Source: Dendrobates tinctorius | Lineage: Eukaryota | Reading direction: 5' to 3' | Length of the DNA stretch: 64,000 bases | Assembly (NCBI RefSeq): GCF_039654945.1 | Contig: NW_027361934.1 | Coordinates: 434,001 to 498,000 of the forward strand | In this document: positions 11,044-61,600 of the stretch, in pieces | How positions within the stretch are numbered: position 1 is the stretch's first letter | How the letters are laid out: each line of letters begins with the position of its first letter | Notes under the pieces: generated by a model | Seen by the model: the letters and a program-made list of their open reading frames with translations, nothing else | Database searches by the model: none | Told to the model about the DNA's origin: nothing | Position numbers and translations under genes: made by a program

Positions 11044-22390
<11,347 letters not shown>

Positions 22391-36685: not shown

Positions 36686-39631
36686 TCACTGATCAGCCGG
36701 AGACAGGGCCGGAAGCAGATCGGCGACAGAGTCCACGTAGAAGTCTGGGACCAGGGACAGGGAGCCGTTTTCTTGGTGGGACTTTGCTTCCTCCAGGCTG
36801 GAGAATCCGGTCAGGGTCAGGAGTGTTCGGATCCCGCAGGTGGAGCCCATCTGAATGTCTGTGTCCAGGCGATCTCCCACCATCACAGTCCGTGACGGAT
36901 CCAAGCCACATTCTCTGACTACGCAGTCGTAGAGGAAAGAGTTGGGTTTCCCGATGACCTGGGCTTTGCGATGAGCTGCAGTTTCGACTGCACGCACCAT
37001 GCAGCCGGTTCCTGGAAAAAAAAAAAAAAAAAAGGCAACTGATAAAAAGTCTAAGCACTTCTAAAGAAAATAAAAATCAGACGGATCATTTTAGGAGTCC
37101 AGCTAAAAAAGTGAAAGAATGACTCCAATGTATTCAGACTCCGCACCGCGAAGTCTGATGGCTGCAGTGAGATCTCAGCAGGGAGGAGGGGCACTGAGGA
37201 TCTGTCAATCAAGCCAAGGTGGGCGGAGTTTCTGCAGCAGGGAGGAGAGGCACTGAGGAGCTGTCAATCAGGCTAAGGTGGGTGGAGAGTCCGCAACAGG
37301 AAGGAGGTGCACTGAGGAGCTGTCAATCATGCTAAGGTGGGTGGAGATTCTGCAGCAGGGAGGCGGGGCACTGAGGAGCTGTCAATCAAGCCAAGGTGCG
37401 TGGAGTTTCTGCAGCAGGGAGGAGAGGCACTGAGGAGCTGTCAATCATGCTAAGGTGGGTGGAGAGTCTGCAACAGTAAGGAGGTGCACTGAGGAGCTGT
37501 CAATCAGGCTAAGGTGGGTGGAGTTTCTGCAGCATTGAGAGGTACTGAGGAGCTGTCAATCAGGCTAAGCTGGGTGGAGATTCTGCCGCAGGGAGGGGCA
37601 CTGAGGAGCTGTCAATCAGGCTAAGCTGGGTGGAGATTCAGAAGCAGGGAGAAGGGGCACTGAGGAGCTGTCAATCATGCTAAGATGGGTAGAGAGGCAC
37701 TGAGAAGCTGTCAATCAGGTGATGTTGGTCAAGATTAAGCAGGAGGAGGGGCACTGAGCTGTCAGTCAGGCTAACATGGGTGGAGATTCTGCAGCAGGGA
37801 AGAGGGGCACTGAGCTGTCAGTCAGGCTAGTGGGCAGAGATTGAGTTTCACTTGTATAAAGGATCATACAGTTCTGCTTACATGGATTATCACATTAAGC
37901 CAAGATAATGCTGGACGCATATTAGGGACAGCAGACTTCTATCTCGTCCTTTGAAGGTTGCCATCTTGGATGACAAAACCACAACCTAATGGTCAATCTA
38001 GACAAACCGACGGCTCAGTCTCTATTACAGCGCGGTCTACAGGTTGATGGAATCTGCACCAATCCCCATAATTAGATCACCAGATAACAAGCGGGAAAAG
38101 ATCTGCCATGGGCTCCATCTGTCACGCTGGTTTGAGCAAAGAATCTGCACTGACGGATAAATGGACTTCGTCTAAATCGGCCTAAATCTGTAGCGCGCGG
38201 CCGGCTCACAGGGACGGTCCTAGACGACCGGAACATTTACATGAAGATCTAGCCCGGGATGGTGAAAAAATGACTACTGCCATTCCTCCGCAGCGCTGCC
38301 TGGGACTCTCGTCTGCTCCCTCATGACCGCTGCAGTCAGTCAGTGACCTCTGATAGGCGGCAGCGGTCATGTTCCACTGTGATTTTAGTGCAAGTGTGAA
38401 CAAGGTCATGAAGTTTTGCAATAACCAGACACATACAAAGGCCGTTGTGTTTTGTTGCATCACCGGCCACATATAACAAGACGTGAAGTAACGAGCGACG
38501 GTGAGACAACAGCGCCGGACGGGATGGAGACACTTCCTCCTCTGTCACAATCATTCATTTTATTATTTTTTTTGTGGTGAGAAAAAAAATTCTGAAAGTT
38601 TGAATAAACTTTACCCAATTCAACACGGCCCGCTATCTTTTCAGTGGGAAACTAACGACGTCTGAGGTAATTGATGGGAGTTTTTCCATTCAATTGCGGT
38701 CAGTGTCAGTCGGCCATCGTGACGGATGTTTCTATAGCGCCTCGTTTCTAAGGTCTACGTTACCGGGAAAAACCTGTCCTAGTAACCATAGCAACCAATC
38801 CCTGCTCAGTTTTAACAGAAACCTGCCTCAGTTACCCATAGCTACCAATCAAAAAATCAGTGACAAAAGACAACTGTCCTAGTTACTCCATGCAGCCAAT
38901 CAGAACGCAGCTTTCATTCTTTACACTGTTCAGTAAACTGAAAGCTGCGCTCTGATAGGTTGCTATGGGAAACAGGGTCAGTGTTTATATAGGAGGCAGA
39001 GGGGCGTCTGCTTCATTATTCCGGTGAGGTCAGTACCGGGGATGACGCGTCCTCCCTCCAGCGGCAGGCGGGTGTCGGTGTTGGTGGCGATGAACAGGCA
39101 GTCCGGGTCCTGCAGATAGTGGAGCGCCCGCGTCAGTTTCATGTAGCCGAAATGCTCGTCGAAGCCGACCACCACCGCCCGCACCTCCGGGTCCTTCTCC
39201 AGCGCCGCCCAGTCCTTCATCCCGCCGGTCACCGGCTCCGGGCCGCTCCCCACGTGCGGGATCCCCGCCGCCTCCAGCTCCCGGCTCAGCGCCGCGCCGC
39301 CGATCAGGTAGACCTTGCCCTGGAGCCGCGCCTCATCCCGCAGGTACCGGGCCGTGCAGTACGCGGTGCCGAACACCTCCCCCGGCTCCGCGCCGAAGCC
39401 CAGCCGGCCCAGCTTGTCGGCGTACATGGCCCGGGTCTTGGTGCTGTTGTTCGTCAGGTAGAAGACCCGCTTCCCGCTGCTCCGCAGAGCGGTGACCAGC
39501 TCCGGGGCCCCCGGCACCGCCTCGTCCCCCCGCCACAGCACCCCGTCACAGTCAAAGAGCACCGTGTCCACCGAGGCCAGGAGCCGGCGGGACAGCTCCC
39601 CGCTCAGCCGCGAGCACTTGGAGGCCGCCAT
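36686..39631 (-). CDS. PGP: Phosphoglycolate/glycerol-3-phosphate phosphatase (HAD IIA), ~306 aa, 2 exons
   Basis: Exons 39631-39037 and 37011-36686. Motifs [42 protein letters not shown]. Synteny fits. Confidence 0.96.
37175..37845. repeat. ~60-bp minisatellite in the PGP intron
   Basis: Repeated GGCACTGAGGAGCTGTCAATCAGGCTAAGGTGGGTGGAG units. Confidence 0.85.
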
Positions 39632-42514
39632 GGTTAATCACTGGCCGCCGGGCGGGAGGGACCGGAAGAGGCGGCTCCGGAGAGGTCTGTCACCGACGGC
39701 AGAGCCGGGTCTGCCCTTATATGAGCACCGGGCGGAGCCGTCTGCAAGGAGAACTGGCGATCAGAATGGCGACATCGCACCTGCTGATTGTCTGAGAGGA
39801 CGTCAGTGGGGAAGAGGGGATGAGAGGACGTCGGTGGGGAAGAGGGGACATTGGTGGGGAAGAGGGCACGAGAGGACGTCGGTGGGGAAGAGGGGACGAG
39901 GGGACGTCGGTGGGGAAGAGGGGACACTGGTGGGGAAGAGGGGACGAGAGGACGTCGGTGGGGAAGAGGGGACGTCGGTGGGGAAGAGGGGACACTGGTG
40001 GGGAAGAGGGGACGTCGGTGGGGAAGGAATGAGAGGACGCCTGTGGGGAAGAGGGGACATTGGTTGGGAAGGAATGAGAGGATGGCAGAGGGGAAGAGGG
40101 GACGTTGGTGGGGAAGAGGGGACGAGAGGACGTTGGTGGGGAAGAGGGGACGAGAGGACGTTGGTGGGGAAGAGGGGACGAGAGGACGTCGGTGGGGAAG
40201 AGGGGACATTGGTGGGGAAGGAATGAGAGGACGTCGGTGGGGAAGGAATGAGAGGACGTCGGTGGGGATGAGAGGACGTTGGTGGGAGGAGGGGACGAGA
40301 GGATGTCGGTGGGGACGAGAGGACGTCGGTGGGGAAGAGGGGACGAGAGGACGTCGGTGGGGACGAGGGGACGTCGGAGGGGACAAGAGGACATCTGTGG
40401 GGAAGAGGGGACGTCGGTGGGGAAGAGGGGACATTGGTGGGGAAGGAATGATAGGACGTCGGTGGGGAAGAGGGTACGAGAGGACTTCGGTGGGGACGAA
40501 AGGACGTCTGTAGGGAAGAGGGGACGTCCGTGGGGAAGGAATGAGAGGACGTCGGAGGGGACGAGAGGACGTCTGTGGGGAAGAGGGGACATTGGTGGGG
40601 AAGGAATGAGAGGACGTCGGAGGGGACGAGAGGACGTTTGTGGGGAAGAGGGGACGTCGGTGGGGAAGGAATGAGGGGATGAGAGGACGTCGGTGGGGAA
40701 GAGGGGACGAGAGGACATCGGTGGGGAAGAGGGGACAAGGGGACGTCGGTGGGGAAGAGGGGACATTGGTGGGGAAGGAATGAGGGGACGTCTGTGGGGA
40801 AGAGGGGACGTCGGTGGGGAAGGAATGAGGGGACGTCGGTGGGGAAGAGGGGACGAGCTAACGTCAGCAGGGAAGGGACAAGAGGACGTCGGTGGGGAAG
40901 AGGGGACAAGAGAACGCACATGTGATGGACTCAGCTTCTGCTGAGCCGATTTTTTGAGTTGACCCTCTGGGCCGTGACACCCACCCACCTAGCGCGAGCT
41001 GACCTAGTGAGGAACCACCCCCTATACAGGGAGCATCAGGGGCAAGACCAAGGGGGTGAGCCACCACGACTGCTGGGACCAGACGGCCGGCTCGGGGAGA
41101 TGCTAGTGAGTGCCTGGCAGCAGGACAAGCAGGATGCAAAACATAAAGCGAGGTCACTGGGTTTCTTCAACAAATGTGGTTTCAAGCTTTAATCAGGTGC
41201 AAGGCATAAACAGTGAAACACAGCAAAGTGCGTGCAAGGGCACGCCAAATGTTCAAGGCATAACACGTGCTAGAAATCATACCAGGGTCCAAGGCAGGGT
41301 ACGTGCTAGGAGACACAACAGGGTTTCAAGGAAGGATGCGTGGGTGCAAGGAAGCACAGAGGGCACGGCTGGGGCACTGGCTAGCTGGTCGGGCTGCGGC
41401 ACAGACAGACGGGCAAGACTGAGGCGAACCCGGCTGAGGCACAACAGGCGGGCACGGCTGAGGCACAAACAGGAGGCTAGGAAGGCCAGGCGCATGCAAA
41501 GGGCGCGCAAGAAACAAGGGGAGGCAAGGCAAGAAACCAAGCAAGGCAAGGTACAGAGCAAGGAGTGGTACGTAGGCAGAAGCACAGTGTCAGGTCATAG
41601 CGAGTATAGAGCTAGCAGCGGAGCGTAGGCCGAAGCCCAGAGCAGGGTCAAGGCAGAGCCTTGAGACTAGCCTGGAAATGTGCAAGAGAGCACCATAGGT
41701 CAGAGAGCAGAGATGGTGTGTGTGCCAGGAGGCACAACAGAGCACCAGGCAGAGAACAGGGCTAGCAGCGGAGCGTAGGCCGAAGCCCAGAGCAGGGTCA
41801 AGGCAGAGCCTTGAGACTAGCCTGGAAATGTGCAAGAGAGCACCATAGGTCAGAGAGCAGAGGAATGGTGCATGTGCCAGCAGGCACAGCAGAGCACCAT
41901 AGGTAAGAGAGGAGGAATGGTGCATGTGCCAGGAGGCACAACAGAGCACCCTAGGTCAGAACAAGGAAGACCAAGCAGAAACAGGGAAGCGGAAGCAGTA
42001 CAAGGAAAGCATAGCATAGTCAAAACATGGCAAAGCAGGCAAAGGCAGAGAACACAGGAAGGACTACAAGTCCAAGCATGACAGAGACAAGACATGGCAC
42101 AGGACATGAGGCAGAGTACAAGCACAGAGCGTGTGCAGAGACGCACGACAGGGCAAATTGCAGGGGCACAGAATACGGGGAGCGACCAAGCAGGGAAGCA
42201 ACACAATACTCAGGCCCCGACCATAGGAAGGGGCGGTCTGATATAGCACCATAGCACCTGCACTTCCGGGTCAGAACCAGGGAAGGACTTCCGGTTCAGG
42301 TCCTCCAGGATCATAGAGAGCATTGCTAGATCAGACTGGGCTGGACCATAGAGAAGGTCACATGATCAGGGGCTCCAGAAACACTGAGAGGTTAGCTGGG
42401 TCAGACAGTGCTTAAAAGTATCTTTTAAGGATTGATTTTTTTGTATATGAGCCGTTGAATAATTAATCCAGAATTATATTTATTAAGAATTTTTGCTGGG
42501 TCAGACAGTGCTGG

Positions 42515-43289: not shown

Positions 43290-43680
43290 TGAGGTACGCG
43301 TGCGCATACACACTGCTCCAGGAGTCACGCAGCACAGCAGTCATGAGGTGTGCAGGCACACTGCTCCAGGGATCTTGCAGCATAGCAGGCATGAGGTGCG
43401 CGTGCACACTGCTCCGGGAATCTTGCAGCATAGCAGACATGAGGTGCGCGTGCACACTGCTCCGGGGATCTTGCAGCATAGCACACATGAGGTGTGCAGG
43501 CACACTGCTCCAGGGATCTTGCAGCATAGCAGGCATGAGGTGCGCGTGCACACTGCTCCGGGAATCTTGCAGCATAGCAGTCATGAGGTGCGCGTGCACA
43601 CTGCTCCGGGAATCTTGCAGCATAGCAGACATGAGGTGCGCGTGCACACTGCTCCAGGGATCTTGCAGCATAGCAGACAT
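43290..43680. repeat. 48-bp tandem repeat (~8 copies)
   Basis: Unit CATGAGGTGCGCGTGCACACTGCTCCGGGAATCTTGCAGCATAGCAGA. Confidence 0.9.
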
Positions 43681-45023
43681 AGCGGGCATGACAGTACATG
43701 GGGAAGGGACAAGAGGACATTAGTGGGAATGAGAGAAAGATGTGGGGGCGATTGAGGAGACGTTGGTAGGGGCAAGGGGGCATCGGTGGCCATGAGCGGC
43801 TTTTGGGGATTAGGGGACGTCGATGGGGATGAGAAGACATTGGAGGCAGCGCCAGTGGGGACTTGAGGACGTCGGTGGGGAAGAGAGGGCAAGGGCACTT
43901 TGGTGGGGACAAGCAGACATCCATGGGGATGTGGGGGCATTGGTGGGGACAAATGAGGAGACGTTGGTAGGGGGGAGGGAACGTCGGCAATGAACAGATG
44001 TTGGGGACCAGGGAACATCAGTGGAGACAAGCAGATGTTGGAGGGGACGTCAGTAGGGAAGAGGGGATGAATGGACAATGGTGGGGACGAGAGGACATTG
44101 GTGGGGATGAATGAGATGTTGGTAGGGGCGAGGGTACATCAGCGATGAGCGGACATTCGTAGGGACAAACAAGGGGACATCGGCGGGGATCAGAGGAAGT
44201 CTTTGGGGGTGAATGAGATGTTGGGAGGGGCAAGGGTGCATCTGTGGCGATGAGCAGAAGTTGGGGATTAGGGGACGTCAATGGAAATGAGAAGACGTCT
44301 AAGGGGGTGCCGGTGGGGACACGGGGATGTTGGTGGGGACGTCAGTAGAGACGAGTGGACGTTGGTAGGAACGAGCGGATGTCGATCGGGGCGAGCAAGG
44401 GGATGTTGGTAGGGGCATGGGCATGTCAGTGGTGATGAGCAGATGTTGGGGACATCGGTAGGGATGAGGCGTAGGTAGGTACGAGCGGAGATCCGTGGAG
44501 ATGTGGGGGCGAATGATGGGACATTGGTAGGGACAAGAGCACGTCGGTGATGAGTGGATGTGCGGACCTTGGTAGGGACAAGCGGACGTCGGTGGCGGTG
44601 AGCAACCAAATTTTTTGTGATTCGCCTCCTGCAATTCCAGCTGGACACATTTGCCCGTGCAGTCTGCTGTATGAGACTAGACTCAGTCTGTATTTGTACA
44701 GGATGGAGACGCTGCCGATTTTCCTTCTGAAAGATACAGATTGGCATTTTTGGTGAGAAGCTCCGCCACATAAACTGATCAGCGCCAATGTCCTTTTATG
44801 CTGCAGAGATCCATGATAGACTCCATTCTGCAATGCTGAGGGTGCAGCCTGCCGTCCGCGAGATTGGATAACGCAGCCTAGGAGTAATGTCTTCATGTTA
44901 CTGAAAAATAAATAGTCACCGCAATAGTTTATTTCTTGTATTTTGTTTATTTTGTGAAATACAGAATAAAACCGCGAGCGGTGAATGAAGGGATGAAGAG
45001 CGGAGGAGAACCCAGGATGTCTT

Positions 45024-48000
45024 CTATACATACAGGTGCTGAGGAGCCGGCCAGAGAAGAGCTGTAAGGAAAGGAGGAGAGCAAGGAACGAGTTCATAGC
45101 TTCTGGGTTTTGTATTTCTAGAATACATTTCTTACAACATCACAAAGCAGGATTGCCGTTCCCTGTAAGAGTCCAGACTAGAAAAATCCCAATCCATCGC
45201 CCTTGATGCTGTAATCTGGACATGACATTAGACAGCCGTAGGCTGAGTGCCCGTGCGACCTCCAGCAATCTCTCCAGACTCTTCCATAGGGCGCAGTCAG
45301 AGGTCCGGATAAATCGGACCACAATGCGGAGACTGGCCGGCGGCTCTGCCGACCCCGGTGTGACACCTTCATATATTTCTATACAACTGTCACGCTCAGG
45401 TTGGGAGAACCGTGACCAGTCCGTACATTGCGGTCCGATCTCCACGGCCGTCTGAGGATTATAATAAAAGGTCAAGTTCAGTTTCATGTTCTTACAAGCA
45501 GGTTGCAATTTTAACCATTACTGAACCAAAGACAACTCCTTTATATCATACCTATGCTCATTGGTCCTGACACATGTTCTTCGGGGGGGGTAGACCTTTG
45601 GGTCACACTTTGGTATCATGTAACAGCCCTGTGTGACTCATTTTTATTATGTTCTGTGTATATTTTACCCATAAAGATATATATCTTTGTTTTTTAATAA
45701 AACCTGTTGCTTGGTGGTCTACCATTTTGTACGCGTAGGATCTGTGTTCTCGGCAGGGAGATTTGTCCCCTTTGTCATCTCTGGACCGCAGTCCTAGAAG
45801 CCCCTTGTCCTGATGATTGTTGGAGGTGCACACATACTGATTTACCAATTACTACCTATTCAGGACATAATGGGCCATCAAATTTATGAAGACAGCAACA
45901 CCCCTTTAAGTGGTGTTCTGGCTCTGATCAGTTTCACATTAAAAAAATAAGGGGTTCGTGACGTCACATCTGACACCTGCCAGGTTACATAAGCGATCAG
46001 CATGCGTCCTATCCTATTGGCAGGAGAGGTAACACCATGACGCGCTCTGTACGGGTTTACCTGAAGCAATAGAACTGTTGATCGGCTTGTTATACATTTT
46101 GAGGAACTTTTCTGGTGTGAGGAACTTCTCGGAGCGAATAAGGAAGTCGATGTTCTCTTCTCTGACCAACAGTTCTGGCGCCAAGTCATGCAGATTTCCT
46201 CCCGGACCTTTGCTGCCAGGCTGCACATATATAGGCATTCAGTTATAATAAAAGCTTTACCATAGGTCTACAAGTCTAGAACGTCAGCATCCAACATATT
46301 ACGTCCTATAATCGCTGTCCTATACGCCTTCACCTATGTTGTTCATTTCCTAAGTGCAAAGTTAAAAACTCTAAATAGCCTTCATGAAAGATTTTCTACA
46401 GTTTTGCTGCTGCAGATTGTGAAGTCCTTTACCTAGCTGATCGCATTTGCAAAACTGATACGAATGGATCACAGCTCCTGCTCCTGACTGTCTGCTCTCG
46501 CCCTTCCTTCACCCAGTGTTAGAGGTTGCAGTAGGAAGATAGGTGTATATAGATGTGCAGTGGACATGGGAGAAAGTATCTAAAGTTTTATGGAGAGCAG
46601 AAAAAAATGCTACAGATAAGGTGGAAAGTAAATAAGTGCAGGATAGAAGCTGTGCTGAAATATGACCAGTTTGGATAGACCTGACTAGTCCGACGTGGCC
46701 CCCGGGCAACTTTCTCAGCCCCATGCCAACTGATTGACAGGTCTCTTCTGACAAGGCCAATCACCTGGTGCTGGGTGGGGATGAGCTAGCCGGGGGGTCC
46801 ATATCGGATTAGTCAGATCTTATCATGTATGGTCCACATTTTTTCAAACTGATTTCTCTGAAACACCGACAAAATGACAGTAAAATGAAAAAAGCTACCA
46901 TAAGTTTCTGCGAGTGGATAAAATCCACTGTTTTTTCGCTACGTGTGAACTTACACTTAGTATCTGAGACAAGAACACTCCTAACTTCAACATCAGAGTG
47001 AGACATTCTTCCACCACGGCCTCCTCCGACTCTTCAGACCCGAAGTCACCCAAGTACTGTGTGGGCGGCTTCACGATGCGGAAACACCACTGCGGGAGCA
47101 GCCGGCGCCGGATGTTGTGGGAGATCACAAGGATTTTGATGTCCTGCAGAAGAGACCTAGAGAATATGGATGAGTTATGTGCGGACGCGGTAAATTGTGA
47201 GGATCGGACCTGTACATAGGTTTACATAACTATTCCAGCCGTTGTAGAAAACACCTATTTCGGTATTGGTTCTAACAAAAAAGAATAAACTCGTACTTTG
47301 CACCCTGGATCTGGATGAGGTCTTGATTTATCCCAGAGAGGATTTCGGAAGAAGCCTATGGAAGCAGTGAATAGGGAGACATTAACAACATACAGGACAT
47401 TTACTGAGGGCTTCATAGGAGATCGCCATTTCTACTATATATTGCAATACTGTAGAATTAAAGGGGTTATTTCTCATCTTCATAGATAGGTATTGTCGGA
47501 TAGAGCTGGTAAAAACAAGCATTTTTCCAATTCATTGCTTATTAAAAATTGCAGCCGTTCTTGAGATATTAACACTTTTCTTTTGTTTACATCTCGTTGC
47601 CAAGGAGACCGACCACTTGGTCTCCAAGGCAACAAGATGAAAAGAAAAATATATCTCATGAACGGCTGAAAATTTTAACAAGTAGTAACTTGCAAAATTG
47701 GTTGTTTTTACAAGCTCTATCTAATAATATACATTTTTGAAGTTGAAAATAATCCCTTTAAGACCGAAAAAAGTAGAAATGTTTTATAAAATGTAAAAAA
47801 AAAAAAATATAGAGGTTTGAGTCAATCCTGCTTTTCTCAGATCAAAAATAATGATAAAAGTAATCGTGTTTGGTATCGTCCGTATGTACCATAAAATGGT
47901 GCAAAGAAAAACGTCAGCTCGTCACGTAAAAAAAAACAAAAAAACACAAGCTCTTACACAGCACCATTGCCTGAAAAATAAAAGTTACGGGTTTCAGAAA

Positions 48001-49591
48001 ATGGCGACAGGAACCAAATATCGAAAAGTTAAAAATCAAGTTGCGGCTCTTGGAAGAAAGGGAGGAAAAAACAAAAGCGCGAAAAAGAAAAATCACGTCA
48101 CAAAGGGGTTAAAAGGCATAGAGGCAGGTGCAAAATTGGACATTTTCTGGCTTAATAAATCTGTCTAAAAAGTATTTGGTCATACCCCTCTTGGACTTGA
48201 CACCTACTTTTTCCACCTTTGGCAGGCATGCTATAAAGGATTTAGTTTATACCAAAAACTGTCAAAAAAGTTCAACGTGTAGTGGTCAGGAATGGTACTG
48301 CAATGTCCCCCCATTCACTTTGGGAGGACCCCACCCTCCGGAGATCAATGACTTATTAAAAAATATCTGAAAGCCCTGGAACGTCCCTTTAATTACCAGT
48401 CTACATTCCCGTTTCATAGCACCAACCTCAATCATATGAATGATGCAGCTGGGGTAGAGCAGCAGTAATCCGGAGATGGATTCTCCCAGGTTGGATTTTA
48501 TCAGTCGGTGAAATAATCTTTCGTAATGATCTGTGTGCAGAGAAAAAATCATCATCATCAATCCATATGTTAAATTTTTTTATATGAGAAATCTTGAGAT
48601 ATTAAGACATGGAGTTTAAAAGTAAGTACACCAGCCTCATTAGGTCTAAGATCTATTTAATAACGTGTGAAGTTGGTATTGTGACATCCAGTGATAGATA
48701 TCCTTTAAAAAAAATGCTCTGGAAAACCCCTTTAAATATGGACCCCCCTACATATTTTGAATTCATTTTAATGGGTTGTACCGTTTGGCTTTTACAGACT
48801 TTTTGTTTCCTAGGCTGCAGAATGAGTTGACTGAGAATATATCAGTGAGCTCTTTTGAGGGTTCTTACAAGAGTGATTGGAACCCTCATCTCTTTTTTTC
48901 TGCACAACTCTGAGAGTTCTTTAAAGTTCAATTTGCAGGGAAAGAAAGAGCCTGTAAAAGCAAAACGGTACAAAAATATCAGTGAAACCCAAATGGAAAA
49001 AAAAATTGCAGCCCAAAATACACACAATTATGTAAGGAAAAAATATTTTCAAAGTTTGTACTTTTTGCACCGCACAGTTACCTGGTAAATCCCTGCGATG
49101 CGCTTGCTCTGGAGTTATCCTCGCCACATAGATCATTCTATGAGTTACTGCCTTCTGCAGAAATTATAGCACAAAGAGATTGGATTAATAGAATGGACAC
49201 TATGACGACCCAGCGTGCACCTCTTATTTCCTTCCCCTAGGCCTTTTTAGGCGGCTCAGGCAGAGGCGTGCTGCATGAGTATTCAAGTGGCTCAGTGTCC
49301 ACGATGGCCACTAAATACCTGAACTCTGTGTACCCAGTACTGGGTCTGGAACGTTTCTCCTAAAGTGTGTCTACTGACACTCTCATCCCAGCTATACTGT
49401 ACACTCGACTGCTGTTCCAAGGTGCCTGTGCTCTTACATAAATAATTTACAAATTCTAATAAAGAAGCTGCGCTGTTCCACATCACTCCAGTGGTAGTCT
49501 GCATATCCAAATCTGCTGTTCCATGCTGGTCCAGGTGCTCACCCACATATTCAGCTCTGCTATTCCACGCTGCTCCAGTGCTGACCTGCAT
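45024..49591 (-). CDS. TEX47: TEX47/C7orf62/DYBLUF-like BLUF-fold protein; 7 coding exons, N-terminus uncertain (ATG 49591 or 50946)
   Basis: Exons (49591)-49319, 49154-49082 (KAVTHRMIYVARI), 48530-48427 (DHYERLF..GESISGLLLLYPSCIIHMIE), 47355-47297, 47156-46955 (IKILVISHNIRRRLLPQW), 46220-46061 (GSKGPGGNLHDLAPELL..FLKMYNKPI), 45061-45024 (LLWPAPQHLYV*). All GT-AG and in phase; AATAAA on the minus strand at ~44946-44951. Confidence 0.85.
47462..47757. mobile_element. T2/Kolobok-type MITE with TTAA TSD
   Basis: TTAA at 47458-47461 and 47758-47761; homologous to 300-740. Confidence 0.7.
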
Positions 49592-50900
49592 ATCCAGCTC
49601 TGCTATTCCACGCTGCTCCAGTGCTGACCGGCATATCCAGCTCTGCTATTCCACGCTGCTCCAGTGCTGACCTGCATATCCAGCTCTGCTATTCCACGCT
49701 GCTCCAGTGCTGACCTGCATATCCAGCTCTGCTATTCCACGCTGCTCCAGTGCTGACCGGCATATCCAGCTCTGCTATTCCACGCTGCTCCAGTGCTGAC
49801 CGGCATATCCAGCTCTGCTATTCCACGCTGCTCCAGTGCTGACCGGCATATCCAGCTCTGCTATTCCACGCTGCTCCAGTGCTGACCGGCATATCCAGCT
49901 CTGCTATTCCACGCTGCTCCAGTGCTGACCTGCATATCCAGCTCTGCTATTCCACGCTGCTCCAGTGCTGACCGGCATATCCAGCTCTGCTATTCCACGC
50001 TGCTCCAGTGCTGACCTGCATATCCAGCTCTGCTATTCCACGCTGCTCCAGTGCTGACCTGCATATCCAGCTCTGCTATTCCACGCTGCTCCAGTGCTGA
50101 CCGGCATATCCAGCTCTGCTATTCCACGCTGCTCCAGTGCTGACCGGCATATCCAGCTCTGCTATTCCACGCTGCTCCAGTGCTGACCTGCATATCCAGC
50201 TCTGCTATTCCACGCTGCTCCAGTGCTGACCGGCATATCCAGCTCTGCTATTCCACGCTGCTCCAGTGCTGACCGGCATATCCAGCTCTGCTATTCCACG
50301 CTGCTCCAGTGCTGACCGGCATATCCAGCTCTGCTATTCCACGCTGCTCCAGTGCTGACCGGCATATCCAGCTCTGCTATTCCACGCTGCTCCAGTGCTG
50401 ACCTGCATATCCAGCTCTGCTATTCCACGCTGCTCCAGTGCTGCCCGGCATATCCAGCTCTGCTATTCCACGCTGCTCCAGTGCTGACCTGCATATCCAG
50501 CTCTGCTATTCCACGCTGCTCCAGTGCTGCCCGGCATATCCAGCTCTGCTATTCCACGCTGCTCCAGTGCTGCCCGGCATATCCAGCTCTGCTATTCCAC
50601 GCTGCTCCAGTGCTGACCGGCATATCCAGCTCTGCTATTCCACGCTGCTCCAGTGCTGACCGGCATATCCAGCCATGCTATTCCACGCTGCTCCAGTGCT
50701 GACCGGCATATCCAGCTCTGCTATTCCACACTGCTCCAGTGCTGACCGGCATATCCAGCTCTGTTGTTCCACGCTGCTCCAGTGCTGACCGGCATATCCA
50801 GCCATGCTATTCCACGCTGCTCCAGTGCTGACCGGCATATCCAGCTCTGCTATTCCACGCTGCTCCAGTGCTGACCGGCATATCCAGCTCTGTTGTTCCA
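49551..50900. repeat. 43-bp VNTR, ~31 near-identical copies
   Basis: Unit GCTGCTCCAGTGCTGACCGGCATATCCAGCTCTGCTATTCCAC; 129-bp higher-order period at the right end. Confidence 0.95.
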
Positions 50901-51398
50901 ATGCCGTCTGGTTCATCCAAATCCGCTGTCCCTCGCTTTGGTCCATGACTCACCTGGTGAAGAGGATTAGTGAACCAACCTCGCCATGCGATCCCATAAC
51001 ATCATGATTACTACAATAAAAATGGCTGATTTCTTGCAAAACAAAGAACAAAACAGCGCCACACCTGTCCATGAGCTGAGCCTGGTATTACCGCTCAGCT
51101 CCACTGAAGTGAATGAGTCTGACTTGCAGTGCTAAACACAACCATGGACAAGTGTGGCGCTGGTTTTTTGTTTGTTTGTTTTTTTTAAATAAAGCAGCCA
51201 TGTTTTTACAACCAAAAGTGACTACAGAATATGAGGAAAGCGGGCGGATAACACGAACCATGTGCTGGGCTTCAAGGAGCGCGGTCAGGGCTGAGGTGCG
51301 GGGGAGACCCGGTGTGGACGAGGGTCTGACATGAGAGGCCATGACTGACGCGCTGTAGGCCGCAGATGCCACCAGAAGAACCTGTGAGCAGCTCCTGT

Positions 51399-51412
51399 GT
51401 TTCCATAGCAAC
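51399..51412. promoter_or_regulatory. RFX X-box upstream of the TEX47-like gene
   Basis: GTTTCCATAGCAAC matches the X-box consensus, in a CpG-rich patch; a CATGGCAAC half-site lies ~25 bp away. Confidence 0.6.
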
Positions 51413-52469
51413 CGCAGGAGACGGGCCCAGATCATGGCAACCAGGTGACTAATGTACACAACAGGGAGGACCCCGGGGATCGCATGGCGGAGTCACATCG
51501 CTGACCACCAGGGAGACGGCAGAGACGATAAATTAACCAGCAGCCTTCATTATTCATTAACTCCGTCAGCAGGAGATGCCGACATCACGGGTGGCGAGGA
51601 CAGCGACCGCATGTGGCCCTCAAGATCCAGCCATGGAGCCCCCATAATGTGGGGGAATCACATAAGTAACAATTCCAGAACATTACGGGCATCGCTTTAT
51701 GTTATCCCATACAGGGCGGCTTTGAGCTCGCTCCGGGGGTCTCACCTCGCCATATGTATACAGGGGACAGCAGCAATTAAAGGGGTTGTCCATTACTAAG
51801 ACCACCCCGCCTCAATCCCCTTCGTAAGATAATAAGACCTATACTCACCTCCATCGCAGCCGCCGCCGGGCCTGGGGGGGTCTCTCCCTGTGCCGCCATC
51901 TTTGCACTCCCGTAAAGCCCAGCATTAGAGAGGACGAAATTCACGATAAAGTACAACATTACTCCAGTGTGTAGTACAAGCGATCAGAGGGCCACGTCAT
52001 CTAGGGGAAAGAAAAAATAAAGAGAAAAATAATAATAAAAAAAAAAAAGTCATAAAAGTTTAAATCTTTTTCTTTTTACATCAATAGTAAAATAATGATA
52101 AAAAATATCTCTGGTGGTCTCGCCATGTGCATAAAAATCCGATGTAAAAAAAAGAAAAGAAATAATCATAAAACAATAAAAAGAAATAAAAAGAAATCCA
52201 GAATCGCTATTGGTCGGTTGCAGCACTTCTTCCCCCACCCAAAAAAAGGGATAAAAATGGTGTAATACACCTTAAAATGGTACCATGAAAAAATGCAGAA
52301 AAATAAAAAAAATATGTTCACAGAGGTCTGATTTTTATCAGTCACTAAAATATATAAAGAGGACAGGGCATTTTTTCTTTTTTTAGGAAAGCGTCCTACA
52401 TTTATCTCCTACATTCAGGTATATGTGGCAATACTATTTCATCACCTACTGCAACTTCTGGCACTTTGC

Positions 52470-52662
52470 CCTTAACCAATATGGCCGCTCCGCCTCTTTT
52501 GCGTTGCGCCGTCACGTTCTCCCTCTTGCCTTCTCCTTTACGTGCCAGCCCTCCGCTCCGTTGTTATGACGACACGGTCGTAAAGTCGCCATTTTGTGTT
52601 GTTTTGCTGCCGCTGTGCGCTCTCGTTCGTTGCGACAGAAGGAGGAGAAGAGCCGGCGAGGG
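52470..52662 (+). promoter_or_regulatory. E4F1 CpG-rich promoter and 5' UTR
   Basis: CpG-dense; YY1-like CGCCATTTT ~52588; ZNF143-type ACTACAACTCCCAGCA in intron 1 at 54035-54050. Confidence 0.55.
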
Positions 52663-55600
52663 ATGAGCTCGGAGCCGGAGGAGGGAGACGCGGTGACTGT
52701 GCCCAGCGGTCTGGTCATCCCCTGCCTCCCCGCGGGGCCGCTCATCAGCCGCTTCAAGGAGGAAGGTGAGAAGACCCGGGGCCCCCATATTGTGCGGGTC
52801 CTCCCCTGCAGGGCCACAACCAGTGCACCTGTGAGGAGAGGGCAGCCATGGCTCCCTGACCCCACGGCAGGCATTAACCCTTTCAGCACCAGGACAGTTT
52901 TCCTTTTTTTGAGGCTTTTATTTTTCCCCTCGCCTTCCAGGAGCCATAGATTTTTTTTCCTTTTTTTTCCTTTTTTTTCTCTTTTTTTTCTCCTTTTTTT
53001 TTATTCCTTTTTTTTTTCCTTTACCCATTTTTTTTCTCCTTTTTTTATTCCTTTTTTTTTTTTTTTTTCCTTTACCCCTTTTTTTTCTCCTTTTTTATTC
53101 CTTTTTTTTCTCCTTTTTTTTTCTCCTTTTTTTATTCCTTTTTTATTCCTTTTTTTTTTTTTCCTTTACCCCTTTTTTTTCTCCTTTTTTATTCCTTTAC
53201 CCCTTTTTTTTCTCCTTTTTTATTCCTTTTTTTTTCCTTTACCCCTTTTTTTTCTCCTTTTTTATTCTTTTTTTTTCCATTACCCCTTTTTTTTCCTCCT
53301 TTTTTTATTCTTTTTTTTTCCTTTACCCCTTTTTTCCTCCTTTTTTTATTCTTTTTTTCTCCTTTACCCCTTTTTTATTCCTTTTTTTTTCCTTTACCCC
53401 TTTTTTTTCTCCTTTTTTATTCCTTTTTTTTCTCCTTTACCCCTTTTTTATTCCTTTTTTTTTCCCCTTTTTTCTTATTCCTTTTTTTTTCTCTCTTTTT
53501 TTTTTTTTTTTTTTTCTTTTGTATTGGATACAGATGAAATCATTTTATAGTTTGCTCGTATGTGGAAAAATATATATTTTATTTTTTTCGTTGTCATTTT
53601 TAATTGAACCAGCGATCAGTATACCATACAAATCGATCACCGTCTCCTATCGACCCCAGTCTGTGGCTTGACTTCGCAAGAGTACCAAGATCGCGGCAAC
53701 CAGGGGTCTTTCCGAATGCCCCACCCCGGGACTGCATTGATGACCCATCAGCACTCGTGTGACAGCCATTAAAATTGCTGCCGCCAGTGATTGACAGCGG
53801 CATTTATATGGTTAAACAGAGATCTCGTTGCTGTTAGGAGGCAGGTGCTTCATGTGCCTAAAATGGTCATTAATGGGTTAAACGGAGTGTGTGCAGATAT
53901 AGATGGAGATTATATACGTACACACTGTGTGTATGTAATTATATATAATATAATTTAACCCATTAATTATCAATATTTGCCTGATACATGTAGGCTCTTT
54001 GTAGTGCAGTATTTTTCTTTTTAGATGATGGCACACTACAACTCCCAGCATTTCTTGGGTTTGCTGAGCTCAGAGAGGGAGCTCTCTGCAGTGGATCTAA
54101 GGTCCGTATTGTGGTTTGGTTCACATTTCCGTTTTCCGTTTCCTTTTTTTTTTTTTTTTCCGTCTTCTCTTTTTTTGTTTAATTTTTAATGTGAGAGAAC
54201 TTGGATTCGAATTTGGATATTTTATTTTTTTTACTTTTTTAGTCGTCTTTGGGTGTTTTAACCCTGCGATCGTCAGATCACTTATACCACGTACTGTAAT
54301 AATATATAATAAAAATCGCCGTTTCCTATAAAGCTCAGCCTGTAGCAGCAGCGGCTGCGACCGATGTGAACAAAGATGGTCAGAAGAAAAAAAATAACAT
54401 TTTTAAGGCTGCATTGAATGAATTTTAGGCGTGGATTAGAAGTCTTTTTATATTTCTGACTTAGTCTCTTTTTGTTCTTGCTGGTCGCAGATGAAGATGT
54501 GCATAGATGTGGTCGCTGTCAGGCTGAATTCACGAGCTTGGAAGAGTTTGTCCAGCACAAGATTCAAAAAGCCTGTCAGCGGGACCTGGATGAAAGCTTC
54601 GAGTCCTCCATATCTGTCCTCAGCAGCCAAGAGGTAAAGGGGATGTATTGCATCTAGGGAAGACTCTTCACAGCGTAACCCCCCTCTCAGGACAGATTTT
54701 TACATCCGATTTTCAGTACTGCCTTATGATTTACAGGGCATCTTTTTTGAGACAACCAATTTTATTAATGCAGTTTTTGGGTGGTCATCTGAAATTAGTC
54801 TTTCTATACTTAAAGCCCCCCCCCCTACACTGTCTGCTGAAACCATCAATATCGACGCGTTCAGACGACTTTCTAATGCATATGGGAGCCCCCGACAGAT
54901 TATTTCTGATGGGGGGGGGGGGTCCCCACATGCTGATCCTCTTGTTCTCTAATAGATAGCCCACCGCCAGAGATTGGTGTCGGCACCCCCTCTTAGAGAG
55001 CAGGAGCAATCTGCCGAGTGAATGGAAGTTGGAGGGGGGAAGCTGTAGGCCAATCCAGCGTTCAGCCATCTAAAGTGTATGGGGGCAACTTCTATCCCCC
55101 AAAGCTATTTATATGACTGTTTGGCCCTTTATGCGTCATCAGCAAGATATGTGTCTTGAAGTCGGATCTGTTAGTTCAGGGTTCCCCAACTCCAGTCCTC
55201 AAGGCCCACCAACAGGTCATGTTTTCAGGATTTCCCTTGTATTGTCAGTTGAAGCAATTGTCACCTGGGCAATACTAAGGAAATCCTGAAAACATGTGTT
55301 AGTTCATTGAGGGGAGATGATGCTCCTGCAACTCCTCGGCCTCCCCTGGATGACTGACAGGTTGTTTGCTCTGATACACTGACTAGCAGGCAACGAGTCA
55401 GAAGAGAGTGCGACTAGTTTGGGAATACGGGTGAGCGGATGCTGAGGAGCTAGAAGCGTCGCCATGCCCCAATGTACCTCCAGTCTTCACTTCAGCCATT
55501 ATTCGCTGCTGACTTTTGGGTGATAGAGGGATAGACTGGCTTATCTCATAAACAGCTCATTCAACATATAATAGTCTAAAGCTGGAGTCACACATGGCAA

Positions 55601-58600
55601 CTTACCAGCGATCCCGACAACGATATCAACGTGTCAGGATCGCTGGTAAGTCGCTATGTGATCGCTGGGGAGCTGTCAAACAGCTTCACCAGCGATTAGC
55701 GCAGTGATGCCGAGCGCGCGGCATCGCTGTGTTCGTTAGCGCTGATGCCATATTCATGTCAAAAATAGAATTAAAATAAAAAATATTGTTCTCACCTTTC
55801 GACGTCCGGCGCAGCATTCCCGCCTCTCTCCACGCTCCGGTCCCAGTAATCCTTTGCGAGAATTACCGCAATGACGTCCGTTCTCGCGGGATCGCGAAGT
55901 CTCGCGGGATCGCGAAGTCTCGCGGTCATTCTTGCAAAGGCTTACTGGGACCGGGAGCGTGGAGAGAGGCAGGAAGACTGCGCGGGACGCCGGAAGGTGA
56001 GAATAACAATATTTTTTAATTATTTTACAGCTGATCGCTGGTCTCCCGCCTGTCACACGCAGCGATGCGTGCTGGCCAGCGGGAGATCAGCGACGAAAAA
56101 AATGTCCAGAGGTTTCTTGCAGCGATCAGCGATACCGGCAGGGGGGCTTATCGCTGTCACACACACCGATCTCGCTGGTGAGATCGCAGTTGTGTCACAA
56201 AAGTTGTGACTCGGCAGCGATCTCGCTAGCGAGATTGCTATGTGTGACAGGGCCTTAATGTACATAGTGCAGTTATCTGTTCTGTAGAGATTACCTCCAC
56301 AGTCATCTCATTATCACAACAGACAGGATTACAATCACTGATAACACCTCTAAATATAAAATGGATAGCTCATTATCCACCATTCACAATAGGAATGTCA
56401 CAGCTCACCTCCTCCTCCTGTACAATGACTGATAACACCTCTATATAAAGGAGATAACACAGGAACCACCATTCACAATAGGGGATGTCACAGCTCACCT
56501 CAGTGTAATGTGCTTGGGGTCCTGTCAGGGGAGGGAAGGATACGGCATGTTGAGTTTCTGTGATCCTTTTCTTTTCTCCCTGGAGAAAGTTTTGCAGGAA
56601 GATCCTAGGAGCGTTGCATTCTTGTTTGGGGTCCAGCATTCTTGTATGGGGGAGCCAGGAGAGAGATCTCGACAGTTGTTCAGCTGACAGTTATCTAATG
56701 TGTACAGGAGCCTTACACAGCAAAGCTTTTGAGCGCAGATTAGGCTCAGTTCACATTATGTTGATGTCAGGAGCACCTTTCTGCTTTTATTTTCAGCAAA
56801 GGCCTCTGTCTCTCATCTTACCTACTGGACATGTAGGTTTGGAGCTTCTCACCACATACCAACACAGTAAATGTCTTGGGGGGGGGGGGGGCGCAACACC
56901 ACTCTAAATTCACCTGCTGGATCTCCAGACTTTCTGGATTATTGAATGACTAATGGATTTTCTTGTATTCGCTTGGGACCTATGAGGTAATAAATGTCAT
57001 GTGTTTGTCACAGCAGGTGGTGCCGTGTATTGAAGAAGATGACGTGGACATCTCCCACGTGGTTGTGGAGACGAGCTCCTTACAGGAGGAGATGAGCAGC
57101 TCTCCGGATATTGGTACGGCTCCGCACCAGCATCTAATGTCCCAGCAGGATCCTGCTGTCGGCCTCTTACATTTATTTCCTATCTCAGCGATATCCGAAG
57201 AAGTTAAGATTGTCTCCAGCGAGGACAGTATGGTGGGCATCCAAAGGGGCGACCTTCTGGGAATGGAGGTGGACTGGCAGGAAGGCCCCGAGGTGCCCAT
57301 ACAGACTGACGACTCTCACCTGGTGAAGATGATTGTGGATGAGAGAGGCCGCTTTATTTGTCAGACTTGTGAGAAGACCTTTAAAAGCGTAGGTGTTTTT
57401 GGGCTGTCCGTACAGTAGAGCTTTGATCCTTGAGGACCCCCGCATGTTTGATGTCCTCCGCTTCCTTTCTAGTGCACCATCCTGAAGGCTCACATGCTGA
57501 CACACAGCACCAAGAAGGACTTTCAGTGCAAGCTGTGCGCGGATTCATTCAGGACCAAGGGCTCCCTCATCCGCCACATCAGGAGGCACACCGGTAAGAG
57601 GGAAGGAAGAGGGCTGCGCCAGGGACCACTGCTCCTTCACTGGCCTGTGTGAACTATGGTGTAGGCAGAACAATGATCGGCCACTGCTAATAGCTGACAT
57701 GTAACAAACTCCCCATACACAGGAACAGGACGGAGTAATCTGTTGTCAGGAGCTTATTTTCCTAATAAATCTAATGTGTTAGGCCACCATTAAAAGGGTT
57801 TGTCTCGCCAGTTTGACGGTGGGGACAGTTACAAAACACATTAGGCCTCTTTCACACTTCCGTTTTTTACAATCAGTCACAATCCGCCAGGTTTTGAAAA
57901 AAACGGATCCTCAAATTTTTTTTGAGGATCCGTTTTTTTCCCCATTGACTTGCATTAATGGCGGATTGTGACGGATTGCTGTCCGTTGCAACCGTTTTTT
58001 TTGAGGATCCGCCAAAAATTGCTGTCCGTCACCATCCTCAAAGATTTCAAAACGGAGCTTGTAACGTTTTTTTCTGTGGCGGATCCTCCAGACACTCATT
58101 TAACCCGAAATTCGTTCTGGGTGCCGGACAAAAAAAAAAATTCTCTCTCTCTCTCTCTCTCTCTCTTTATATTTCCGCATTTTGCCATCCGTTCACATCA
58201 GTTAACAACGGATCCGCTTCAATGACTTTTTGGCGGATTTCAACTGATGCAAAAAAACTGAAGTGTGAAAGAGGCCTTAGACCGTCAAATGAATCTGCTG
58301 ACCCTGGCAGGCTTGGCCAACAGGCTAATGTGTGGGGGGCCTCCCCGCCTTTCTCGCTGACACTGGTGTCAGGGAAGAGAAGGATCGGCATGTCTGATTT
58401 TTGGACAGCACCTAAAATCTCCCAGGAGCAGCCCTGATATCTGGTGAGAAGGAACAACAAAACGGGGCCAAACTCCTGGGTTGTGGTATACCGAAAGCAG
58501 GATCCAAGACCGTCTGCAGCTCTTTCCACTAAATCAGCGCTGCCGCGTGTTTTCTTAAGCTGTTGCCGAATAGTCACTGTTCGGTAACGGCTTAAGAAAA

Positions 58601-61600
58601 TACATCACTCTGAAATATAACGTGCCTGTATGGGGGTTGTGTCAACAGCACATGTAACAGCTGCAGACTGTAATTTTGGCGTTATCCACTTTGAATGGTC
58701 AGCAAAAGGGGGTGCAATTTAGAAAGCTCCATTTTTCTTTCTATGGAAACATCGTTTTCATTTCTGGTCTCCTGTTTTTTCTATACGTTCTTACCAGACG
58801 AACGCCCATACAGCTGTTCAAAGTGCGGGAAGAGTTTCCGAGAGTCGGGGGCATTAACGAGGCATATGAGGTCTCTGACACCCTGCACAGAGAAGATCAG
58901 CCATGTCATGGGAAACAGCATCGTCCTGAAACGTGATGCAAACTCATCAGGTCTGTGCACATCAAAGACTCATTTCTTATGCACTAGAGGGGGTCTCCCA
59001 ACCAGTGAGCGCTTTCCTATATTCTTATTTTCTTGGCTTGTATGATGATGGGGTGATGGTGCCAGATTTTGTAATGTTTGTCCACTGCATTTTTTACTGT
59101 TCCAGTGTGAATTGAGTTTTCCGTCTTTCCCTGTTGCAGTTTTAGTATCTACAGACGTCACGTCGCACTTGGGAACCGATGAACTAGACGGCAGCCCGGT
59201 GATCCAACTAGTGACAGACGAGAAGGGCAACCTACTGCATGAGATTCATGTCCAGGTGCGAGCTGTGGCTTTCAAAACAGGGGTGAGTAGTGATTTTCCT
59301 GTAAAGTGTCAAAACAAGTCTCCTGACGTCGAGACGCCGCAGTCGTTCCAGTCGCAGCTTTGTCAGTAGTGTGTTTGTTTTGACATGCAGGGAAGATGGA
59401 GACAGACAGTGATAATGCATTTTATGCAGGGGGCTACGTGGTGTCACTAGTAATACGCTGTAGGGTATCAAGGTGTGATGATATCCGCTGATATCTGTTG
59501 TTTTTTTTTTCCAATAGATAGATGGTATACTGAACAAGGACGCAGAGGATCTCCAGTGTCCAGAGTGTGGGGAAATTTGCAAGAGTGGCAACTCCTTAAA
59601 GGTCCATCTGAAAGGACATGAAGGTAAAGCATCATTTGCTATGCCTACCCTGAGTACTCAGAGCCTGCGGTCAGGATAGATGGGTGAAAACACAGAAATT
59701 GGTGTGATAAAGTCACAGAAAAGCCCCTTGACGTTCTGAAAAAAAGCACTTTCTGCCCCGTGGTTCATCACCTCACCCTTCTCAGCCACAACTTATCGTG
59801 ACTGTATTTTCTCGTTCACCATGGCCACAATTCCTGTCTTGATCGCGGGTATTGTGACCTGAACTAACAACGTCCCATCACTTGCAATTCAGCTGGAATA
59901 ACATTTTGTCAGTCTGCATTTTACTGCAAGAGAGATGGACACCGTGGTGAAACCAGGTAATTAATCTCCGCTTGTCTCTGCAGGGTGCAAGCTGTTTCGC
60001 TGCGAAGAGTGCAGCCGCGAATTCTTGAAGGCTCACATGCTGAAAAAGCATCAAGAATCCCACGGCAATATCCGTAAATACAGATGCGGAGAATGTGGGA
60101 AGATGTACAAAACAATAGCGCACGTCAAGGGCCACATGAGGGTACACTCTGATGACCGGCCTTACTCTTGTCCAAAGTGTGGGAAAAAATACAAAACGAA
60201 GGTGAAAAGGGGCAGGGGTGGTGGTGGTAGCTGTTTGTTTTACATATTCTGTCCCCATGGCAAAGTTTAATCAATTTTTTTCTATTCTATAAGCTCCTTG
60301 TATTTGCCTCTTGTCACAGAACGCTCAGCAAGTTCATTTACGCACCCACATGGAAGACAAACCGTACGTGTGCCAGTACTGCCCCCATAGCTTTAGGGAG
60401 AAGGGATCCTTGGTGCGTCACATCAGGCACCACACGGGTGAGAAACCATTCAAGTGTCCTAGATGCGGTCGAGGATTTGCAGAGCACGGAACGTTAAACC
60501 GCCACATGAAGACCAAAGGCAAGTGTGCGCATCTACGTCATGTCGTGTCCCCGACTTTGATGCGGGCACCAGGGCTGAGCCCACATCTTTCCCCACACAT
60601 GACAGCTGACTTGGAAAAAAAATTCTGATTATCACCTATGTTTGGTATCTGCACACTCGCACTGACCTGATGAATCATATTCATATTGCAGGTTAGTTTT
60701 TAGTAAACATGATAAATGAAAAAAGAAACTATGGAATTGCAGTTTTACTACACTTGAATTTTTCTTTTCCTCTTTTCAGCACACTATATGGTATTATCAA
60801 TGGTGTTGTTTAAAAGTTATTGCTCTTGCAATAAGGGGAGGGAAAAAAACGGCCATGGTGTCAGTGGGTTAAAGGGTATGTTTGGCGCCTCATTTCCTCA
60901 TCCGGGGGGGGGGGGGGGGGGGTTTACATACCTACCAGGATGCGCTCACAATAGGCACAATGTCATTGACACCGCGCACCTCCTAATGTGGAAATGAGTG
61001 GTTTTGAACGTACCTCACAGATCACTGTATTGCAACAATATCTTGTTTTTTTTCTAGGGGGGCTCACTGTCCCTGTTTCTTCTCTTTTCTCCAGGGGGCT
61101 GTGTGATTCTTCAGCTGGACACAGATCAGACTGAACAAACGGCGACTGAAAACAGCAATAGTTCGGAGGCCATGAGCAGCACAACGGCCTCCGAGGAGCC
61201 GCACACGATGCTGGTGGAGTTTTCTTCAGTGGTCGCCGATACTCAGGAATATATTATTGAGGTATTTACTAGTAAACTGAAACAAAATACTATATTCTGT
61301 GTTCAAGAGTTTCTGAAGCAGCGGCCCGGAGGGGACACTTGGTAATGTAGTACAAGTGGTGGCCAGCATTTAGTTTTGTCCTTTTTCTTTTTTTATTTTC
61401 TCCTCATACACAGACTTCTGAAGAAATAGAAACTAGTGAGGCGGCTGAGCTGCTGCAGAGCACAGGAACGCAGGAGGTGAGTGGCAGTACTATTATAGAT
61501 GGTGGCATTTCAGCCACACTCGATGCTAATAGGAAAGGACCCCAGACATATTACAAAAAAGTCGACTCAACGCACCAAGGTTGGAGGGATCGACCAACTA

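Follow-up and report, generated by a model that had tools for sequence, protein, structure and literature searches.

The window analysed here is a stretch of 64,000 nucleotides from Dendrobates tinctorius (NCBI RefSeq assembly GCF_039654945.1, contig NW_027361934.1, positions 434,001 to 498,000 of the forward strand), which carries a TEX47 gene between PGP and an E4F1-type zinc-finger gene. TEX47 belongs to the same family as MOT7/DYBLUP, a partner of the inner-arm dynein f/I1. Taken jointly, the evidence makes it likely that this gene is an intact and transcribed orthologue that keeps seven ancestral coding exons, that it reached its present site by a DNA-level move in hyloid frogs, and that the mammalian TEX47 is a retrocopy. 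The site between PGP and E4F1 is not the ancestral home of TEX47, but the result of a recent, frog-specific move.

Gene structure, first exons and promoter

The gene consists of seven in-phase coding exons on the minus strand (45024-51342), with canonical AG/GT borders throughout. Coding exon 1 (51259-51342) comprises 28 codons from the ATG, begins with MASHVRPSS and ends in phase 0 at a GT donor. It is supported by the RefSeq model, by the conservation of its peptide among frog orthologues and by the DNA alignment to exon 1 of Bufo and Mixophyes. Exon 2 (49082-49154) encodes the beta-1 strand of a BLUF-like fold with Tyr37 and covers positions 2-21 of the Pfam TEX47 profile, while exon 3 (48427-48530; Pfam expectation value, E, 3.4e-11) encodes beta-2/beta-3 with His84 in the place of the BLUF Gln. 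They are followed by exon 4 (47297-47355), exon 5 (46955-47156; E 2.6e-15) and exon 6 (46061-46220; E 2.5e-10), the intron between exons 4 and 5 having its donor at 47296 and its acceptor at 47157. Exon 7 (45024-45061) encodes the C-terminal motif WPAPQHLY, which is kept from shark to mammals in the alignment, and ends with the stop codon at 45024-45026.

Four of the exons, translated singly, match the Pfam TEX47 family (PF24787) in colinear profile order (E 2.6e-15, 2.5e-10, 3.4e-11 and 0.038), and the full RefSeq protein matches it with 207 bits (cut-off 25; E 2.3e-61) over positions 2-192 of 192. The spliced product of 239 residues is 100% identical to residues 32-270 of RefSeq P0189, "testis-expressed protein 47-like [Dendrobates tinctorius]". 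The gene is thus a member of a known family and is already annotated in RefSeq, and the seven in-phase exons with a TEX47-like product that had been read from the letters alone are borne out. Exon 5 alone retrieves 66 proteins with phmmer from 1.8 billion representative proteins; those whose names were looked up are all vertebrate TEX47, from lampreys to mammals. Xenopus tropicalis also carries TEX47.

Transcription is supported by a spliced contig of 3023 nucleotides with high depth in the public run X1, which comes from a close relative with about 3% differences to the window. Five of the six junctions occur in it (45061|46061, 46220|46955, 47156|47297, 47355|48427 and 48530|49082), including both junctions of exons 3, 4, 5 and 6. 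Among the runs recorded as RNA, none contains the stretch, and X3 and X4 match only repeats.

A gene that is broken or decaying, for example through disruption of its first coding exon by a 43-bp minisatellite, might be suspected from the 1.4-kb array close to the 5' end and from the false exon beside it. However, the array (49501-50900, 32.5 copies by Tandem Repeats Finder) lies wholly in intron 1 and leaves the exons intact, a related array is found in the same intron of Phyllobates, the frame is open across all seven exons, and the mRNA in X1 is correctly spliced in a contig of high depth. Decay is consequently an extremely improbable explanation. The false exon is a candidate at 50954-51010 with good splice sites, but stop codons open its sole usable frame and it was rejected.

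The 5' end is more complex. Upstream of exon 2, the loose end of the X1 contig behind 49156 equals window positions 51851-51880 and bypasses exon 1. Here, an alternative first exon, E1' (51849-51899 as a minimum extent, minus strand), is spliced to exon 2 while exon 1 is skipped. Its 3' end lies at 51849 with a GT donor, and an ATG at 51899 is in frame in D. tinctorius. The donor is conserved in Phyllobates, where the ATG is out of frame, and the DNA alignment shows no recognisable counterpart in Bufo. These features make E1' a probable leader exon of young age, for the most part non-coding, arising near the E4F1 promoter. Past exon 2, some 2.4 kb of the X1 contig is unplaced. This part may continue into the antisense E4F1 mRNA, in which case the 5' ends of the two divergent genes would overlap.

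The RefSeq model carries a further N-terminal extension of 31 residues (51343-51435), which reads through a conserved X-box. Since its ATG at 51435 is missing in Bufo, the extension is doubtful and probably represents an annotation artefact. Accordingly, the extent of 45024-51450 given in the initial annotation holds at its lower limit, while the upper one matches this non-conserved upstream ATG.

The X-box in question is a palindromic RFX-type element, GTTTCCATAGCAAC, at 51399-51412, 57-70 bp upstream of the conserved ATG. It fits the ciliary X-box consensus GTHNYYATRRNAAC on both strands, with an exact match at -70; in the whole window the pattern has 4 matches against 0.43 expected. A second half-site, GTTGCCATG, is located about 25 bp further upstream. 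At -70 to -80 of the conserved ATG the X-box recurs in Phyllobates, in Bufo (degenerate, with 2 mismatches to the palindrome) and in Ascaphus, and the Mixophyes promoter has a degenerate aligned copy as well as additional copies upstream. The conservation thus spans frogs with the old TEX47 locus and frogs with the new one. Pattern match and conservation together confirm the upstream RFX X-box noted earlier, and from them we infer that RFX would bind there.

Similar motifs occur elsewhere in the window. An X-box-like GTCGTCATAACAAC is found at 52560-52573, about 90 bp before the E4F1 start codon, and an identical motif is present at the matching place in Bufo, at -1825 from the TEX47 ATG. An exact X-box match, GTAACCATAGCAAC, is located in the intron of PGP at 38782-38795, a short way downstream of that gene's exon 1.

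Changes of locus in frogs and mammals

Orthologous loci were compared with 10-kb flanks. In Spea bombifrons, Mixophyes fleayi and the turtle Trachemys, an SSF (SLC5-type) transporter gene is followed by TEX47 and then by a convergent BAR-RhoGAP gene. One side of this arrangement is seen in the whale shark, where the SSF transporter is directly upstream of TEX47, and the other in Rana temporaria, where the BAR-RhoGAP gene is downstream. In Ascaphus the BAR gene is likewise downstream, and BRICD5/PGP and two MLST8 exons are upstream. The transporter exons of Spea and Mixophyes are 75-91% identical, with about 70% identity to those of the turtle, and the BAR-RhoGAP products have 844-884 residues. 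In human, SLC5A11 and ARHGAP17 constitute one locus and TEX47 is not listed in that neighbourhood (PMC4564198). Judged by position, the ancestral neighbours were probably SLC5A11 and ARHGAP17.

A different order is found in the hyloid frogs. The Bufo gargarizans locus reads E4F1-like, TEX47, PGP, BRICD5, that of Phyllobates reads TEX47, PGP, and among the loci compared the order E4F1, TEX47, PGP is confined to hyloids (Bufo, Phyllobates, Dendrobates). The six coding introns nevertheless occupy identical places in shark, Ascaphus, Spea, Rana, Mixophyes, Bufo, Phyllobates, Dendrobates and turtle. The gene tree, which had been proposed as a check, follows the species tree without a duplication node; in it the hyloid frogs form a clade (100/99), with Myobatrachidae including Mixophyes as the sister group. 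Because only hyloids share the new order and Mixophyes in their sister group has the old one, the move is placed on the hyloid stem. Every intron is retained, as is the promoter to about -130, therefore a DNA-level rearrangement is indicated. It could have been a transposition or two nested inversions that shared the PGP|E4F1 breakpoint, each of which yields the observed order and orientation. The move of an intact gene with its promoter next to the E4F1 promoter appears to be new.

The initial annotation had taken the PGP-E4F1 gap for the ancestral vertebrate locus, parent of the mammalian retrocopy, from which mammals lost the gene. Three frogs do carry the gene there, human PGP and E4F1 are close together without TEX47 (PMC4740877), and Ascaphus TEX47 is less than 10 kb from BRICD5/PGP. 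However, that claim is contradicted by the transporter-TEX47-RhoGAP order in Spea, Mixophyes and Trachemys, with the SSF side in whale shark and the RhoGAP side in Rana and Ascaphus. The gene tree puts Mixophyes in the group that is sister to the hyloids, and in Ascaphus order and orientation are unlike those of hyloids and no E4F1 exon is found in the 10 kb upstream. An ancestral locus at this site is consequently very unlikely.

The Ascaphus truei locus has peculiarities of its own. Directly upstream of TEX47 it has the BRICD5 3' end and the two final MLST8 exons (6139-8228, opposite strand), and the 29-kb locus is without the remaining MLST8 exons, which reflects either a rearrangement or an assembly problem.

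For mammals, introns and loci were compared in echidna, Dromiciops and Rattus, with Trachemys as the one sauropsid locus. In contrast to the six coding introns and the X-box promoter of the frog gene, the coding sequence (CDS) of mammalian TEX47 is a single exon at another locus: 762 bp in echidna, 876 bp in Dromiciops and 762 bp in Rattus, each colinear with the protein, and each elsewhere in the genome. The echidna copy is at a chromosome end; according to a preprint, monotreme TEX47 adjoins DMRT6 and is non-syntenic with the human chromosome 7 gene (bioRxiv 10.64898/2026.07.14.738559). The Dromiciops copy sits within an intron of a gene for a ZNF804-type protein of 1356 residues and runs on the strand opposite to it (locus 1-20876). 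The mammals group together in the gene tree (100/98), with the sauropsids as their sister. As the tree matches the species tree, the genes are orthologues, and the change to an intronless gene took place either on the mammalian stem or twice. Mammalian TEX47 is thus very probably an intronless retrocopy, as far as gene structure and position can tell. The earlier proposal that a retrocopy replaced the intron-rich gene in mammals is upheld by the single-exon CDS in all three, none of which shares the frog coding introns. In the marsupial and the rat, a splice acceptor is present just upstream of the CDS; this suggests that mammalian TEX47 gained exons in its 5' untranslated region (5'UTR).

Mammalian TEX47 has the look of an orphan retrogene, its parent of seven exons having been located between the SLC5-type transporter and the BAR-RhoGAP gene. 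As in the orphan retrogenes described for mammals (PMC3548309), the copy is intronless at a new locus and outgroups are multi-exon; to judge from the gene lists for human in PMC4564198 and PMC4740877, it is apparently also the only copy left. In that screen human genes were set against those of chicken and worm; TEX47 is unnamed in its text, and none of its 25 genes is testis-specific. A full-text literature search and the main texts of the retrogene papers gave no link of TEX47/C7orf62 to retroposition, and this status appears to be new.

It could also be supposed that retroposition occurred twice, monotremes and therians each having copied a surviving stem parent and each having later lost it. 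The echidna copy at a chromosome end next to DMRT6 (bioRxiv 10.64898/2026.07.14.738559), the marsupial copy inside a ZNF804-type gene on the opposite strand, and the absence of any similarity outside the CDS are consistent with two events. However, a single retroposition followed by rearrangement in monotremes needs fewer losses, an alignment of such old flanks is not expected, and the one well-supported mammalian clade with its fairly long stem branch fits both models. We regard two events as unlikely, though much less so than an ancestral locus at the PGP-E4F1 site.

A third alternative makes the frog gene a TEX47-like paralogue rather than the orthologue of mammalian TEX47. RefSeq indeed names most frog proteins "testis-expressed protein 47-like", and the locus is unlike that of other tetrapods. 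On the other hand, searches return one gene per species, the tree mirrors the species tree with no duplication node, the intron positions are identical, and sequences from the old and the new locus can be aligned over exon 1 and the X-box of the promoter, so that paralogy is highly improbable.

We therefore favour orthology with a hyloid move and a mammalian retrocopy. In this scenario the seven-exon structure is ancestral for jawed vertebrates, in a neighbourhood of SLC5-type transporter, TEX47 and convergent BAR-RhoGAP gene. On the hyloid branch a DNA-level move brought the gene into the PGP-E4F1 gap together with the introns and no less than about 130 bp of the promoter, and in mammals an intronless retrocopy very probably replaced the intron-bearing gene.

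Several points weigh against this scenario. The sole transcript observed (X1) starts at E1' and skips the X-box-proximal exon 1, so that annotation and conservation are what suggest a use of exon 1 and the X-box promoter. The inspected set comprises one sauropsid locus and those of three mammals. Around the mammalian copies neither a poly(A) tail nor target-site duplications were found, and a comparison of the echidna, marsupial and rat flanks gave no similarity outside the CDS; the loss of such traces is to be expected for an insertion that goes back to the mammalian stem. SLC5A11 and ARHGAP17 are names that follow from Pfam domains, product lengths and the human map rather than from a tree and are accordingly provisional. 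Finally, the upstream side in Ascaphus consists of BRICD5/PGP and two MLST8 exons in place of the transporter.

Protein fold and possible function

Against solved structures, the family profile finds bovine sperm TEX47 (9FQR_H0) at E 3e-101, MOT7 (8GLV_D9) at E 3e-22 and the BLUF domains of bPAC at E 1e-3. The profile search proposed as a check on membership of the TEX47/MOT7 family thus answers in its favour, with PF24787 at full length and 8GLV_D9 at E 3e-22; the name "DYBLUF" used in the initial annotation should read DYBLUP, as published. The AlphaFold model (predicted local distance difference test, pLDDT, 75; predicted template modelling score, pTM, 0.75) has a beta-alpha-beta-beta-alpha-beta-beta core and C-terminal helices. 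Foldseek ranks 9FQR_H0, 8GLV_D9 and 9Y6S_7M, a chain of the Leishmania doublet microtubule, first to third, and then BLUF photoreceptors (AppA, TePixD, Slr1694, BlrB and BlsA, E 1e-5 to 1e-4). Superposed on 9FQR_H0, the frog model reaches a template modelling score (TM) of 0.91 by the target's length at a root-mean-square deviation of 2.1 Å.

Mammalian TEX47 (9FQR chain H0) belongs to the same Pfam family, has about 40% identity to the frog protein and shares the C-terminal motif WPxP. It has Leu or Phe where the frog protein keeps the BLUF Tyr37, and it has been reported as sperm-specific (PMC11779644). MOT7/DYBLUP (8GLV chain D9) is homologous over its full length with about 22% identity, has a BLUF-like fold and shares both Tyr and His. 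It is a tether/tetherhead partner of f/I1, and its blue-light phenotype has been shown only in the alga. The bacterial BLUF photoreceptors AppA, PixD/Slr1694, TePixD, BlrB and bPAC are alike in fold, Tyr and Trp, whereas the frog protein has His for Gln, Phe for the beta-5 Met, and an added C-terminal helical domain.

As to the light- or flavin-sensing module suggested by the initial annotation, the fold is BLUF-like, but a defining feature of the sequence is absent. The Pfam BLUF profile (PF04940) gives no match to the frog protein at E up to 10, and the shark orthologue reaches 13 bits against a cut-off of 25. The photoactive Tyr of beta-1 is present as frog Tyr37, aligned with the Tyr of bPAC and MOT7; it is kept in amphibians, coelacanth and MOT7, whereas the turtle, bird and mammals examined have Phe, Val or Leu instead. 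This substitution seems to be as old as the amniote split or older, and not to go with the retroposition. The photoactive Gln of beta-3, however, is His84 in the frog, aligned to the Gln of bPAC FFQILEG, and His at this place is nearly invariant across the family, MOT7 included. In addition, the beta-5 Met is Phe. MOT7 binds FAD/FMN (flavin adenine dinucleotide and flavin mononucleotide) only weakly, and flavins are "unlikely to be an intrinsic ligand" (Kutomi et al. 2021, PMC7909887). The light-sensor reading is weak because the key BLUF Gln is missing throughout the family. A canonical blue-light photocycle in TEX47 is therefore unlikely to judge from these residues, and a structural or redox-linked role at the tether would be the better reading.

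As for that role, Ciona DYBLUP and Chlamydomonas MOT7 associate with the inner-arm dynein f/I1 and the tether complex, and the mot7 mutant has an altered blue-light acclimation (PMC7909887). Leishmania LAX28 is required for f/I1 assembly (bioRxiv 10.1101/782888). In bovine sperm, TEX47 is a tether/tetherhead subunit specific to sperm and is in contact with the f-beta linker (Leung et al. 2025, PMC11779644), while human respiratory axonemes are without a MOT7 equivalent (PMC10266980). By analogy, the frog protein of about 240 residues, with a BLUF-like fold followed by C-terminal helices, would most likely be located in the sperm tether/tetherhead, in contact with the f-beta motor of dynein f/I1, and perhaps also in other motile cilia. 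Its expression would be driven by the conserved, promoter-proximal RFX X-box.

A tentative proposal, for which we claim a possibility and clearly less than an even chance, is that through retroposition in mammals TEX47 lost its ancestral ciliary promoter with the RFX X-box and so became restricted to the testis. If so, this would explain why TEX47 is found in the mammalian sperm tether/tetherhead and respiratory cilia have no MOT7 equivalent (PMC10266980, PMC11779644), and frogs and other non-mammals with introns and X-box would use TEX47 in all motile cilia. When 2 kb upstream of the mammalian CDS was scanned, only distant, non-conserved partial X-box matches were found; the true mammalian promoters are probably upstream of the 5'UTR introns. 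The proposal offers a concrete, testable reason for sperm-only TEX47 in mammals, and it points to frogs for the question of whether the ancestral protein functions in motile cilia of every kind.

Neighbouring genes and repeats

The placement of the gene between PGP and E4F1, as first annotated, is confirmed by domains, by the closest solved structure and by zinc-finger exons. PGP (36689-39637, minus strand), the downstream neighbour of TEX47, has two coding exons with the Pfam domains Hydrolase_6 and Hydrolase_like. Its best solved relative is the glycerol-3-phosphate phosphatase 7PO7 (E 1.9e-72, versus 1e-42 for PDXP). The E4F1-type C2H2 zinc-finger gene (approximately 52663-62232, plus strand) stands head to head with TEX47, and its start codon near 52663 was placed by homology with the Bufo gene. 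Beyond PGP there are a BRICHOS exon and then MLST8-like WD40 exons. In human, MLST8, BRICD5, PGP, E4F1, DNASE1L2 and ECI1 are within 20 kb of one single-nucleotide polymorphism and TEX47 is not listed (PMC4740877), in agreement with the earlier statement that PGP and E4F1 are neighbours there without it.

G-rich minisatellites with units of 20-48 bp and a 48/144-bp array (39794-40916, 43300-44400) fill the 5.4 kb that separate PGP from the 3' end of TEX47, and related repeats are found between the two genes at the matching place in Phyllobates. Several Tc1/mariner-like transposase frames and one long piggyBac-like frame of 580 residues (6433-8172, 19348-20491, 29079-30065, 31693-32475 and 34046-35140) are located within and near MLST8 as well as between BRICD5 and PGP. 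In addition, a T-rich low-complexity tract of 570 bp (52951-53520) lies just after the first E4F1 coding exon.

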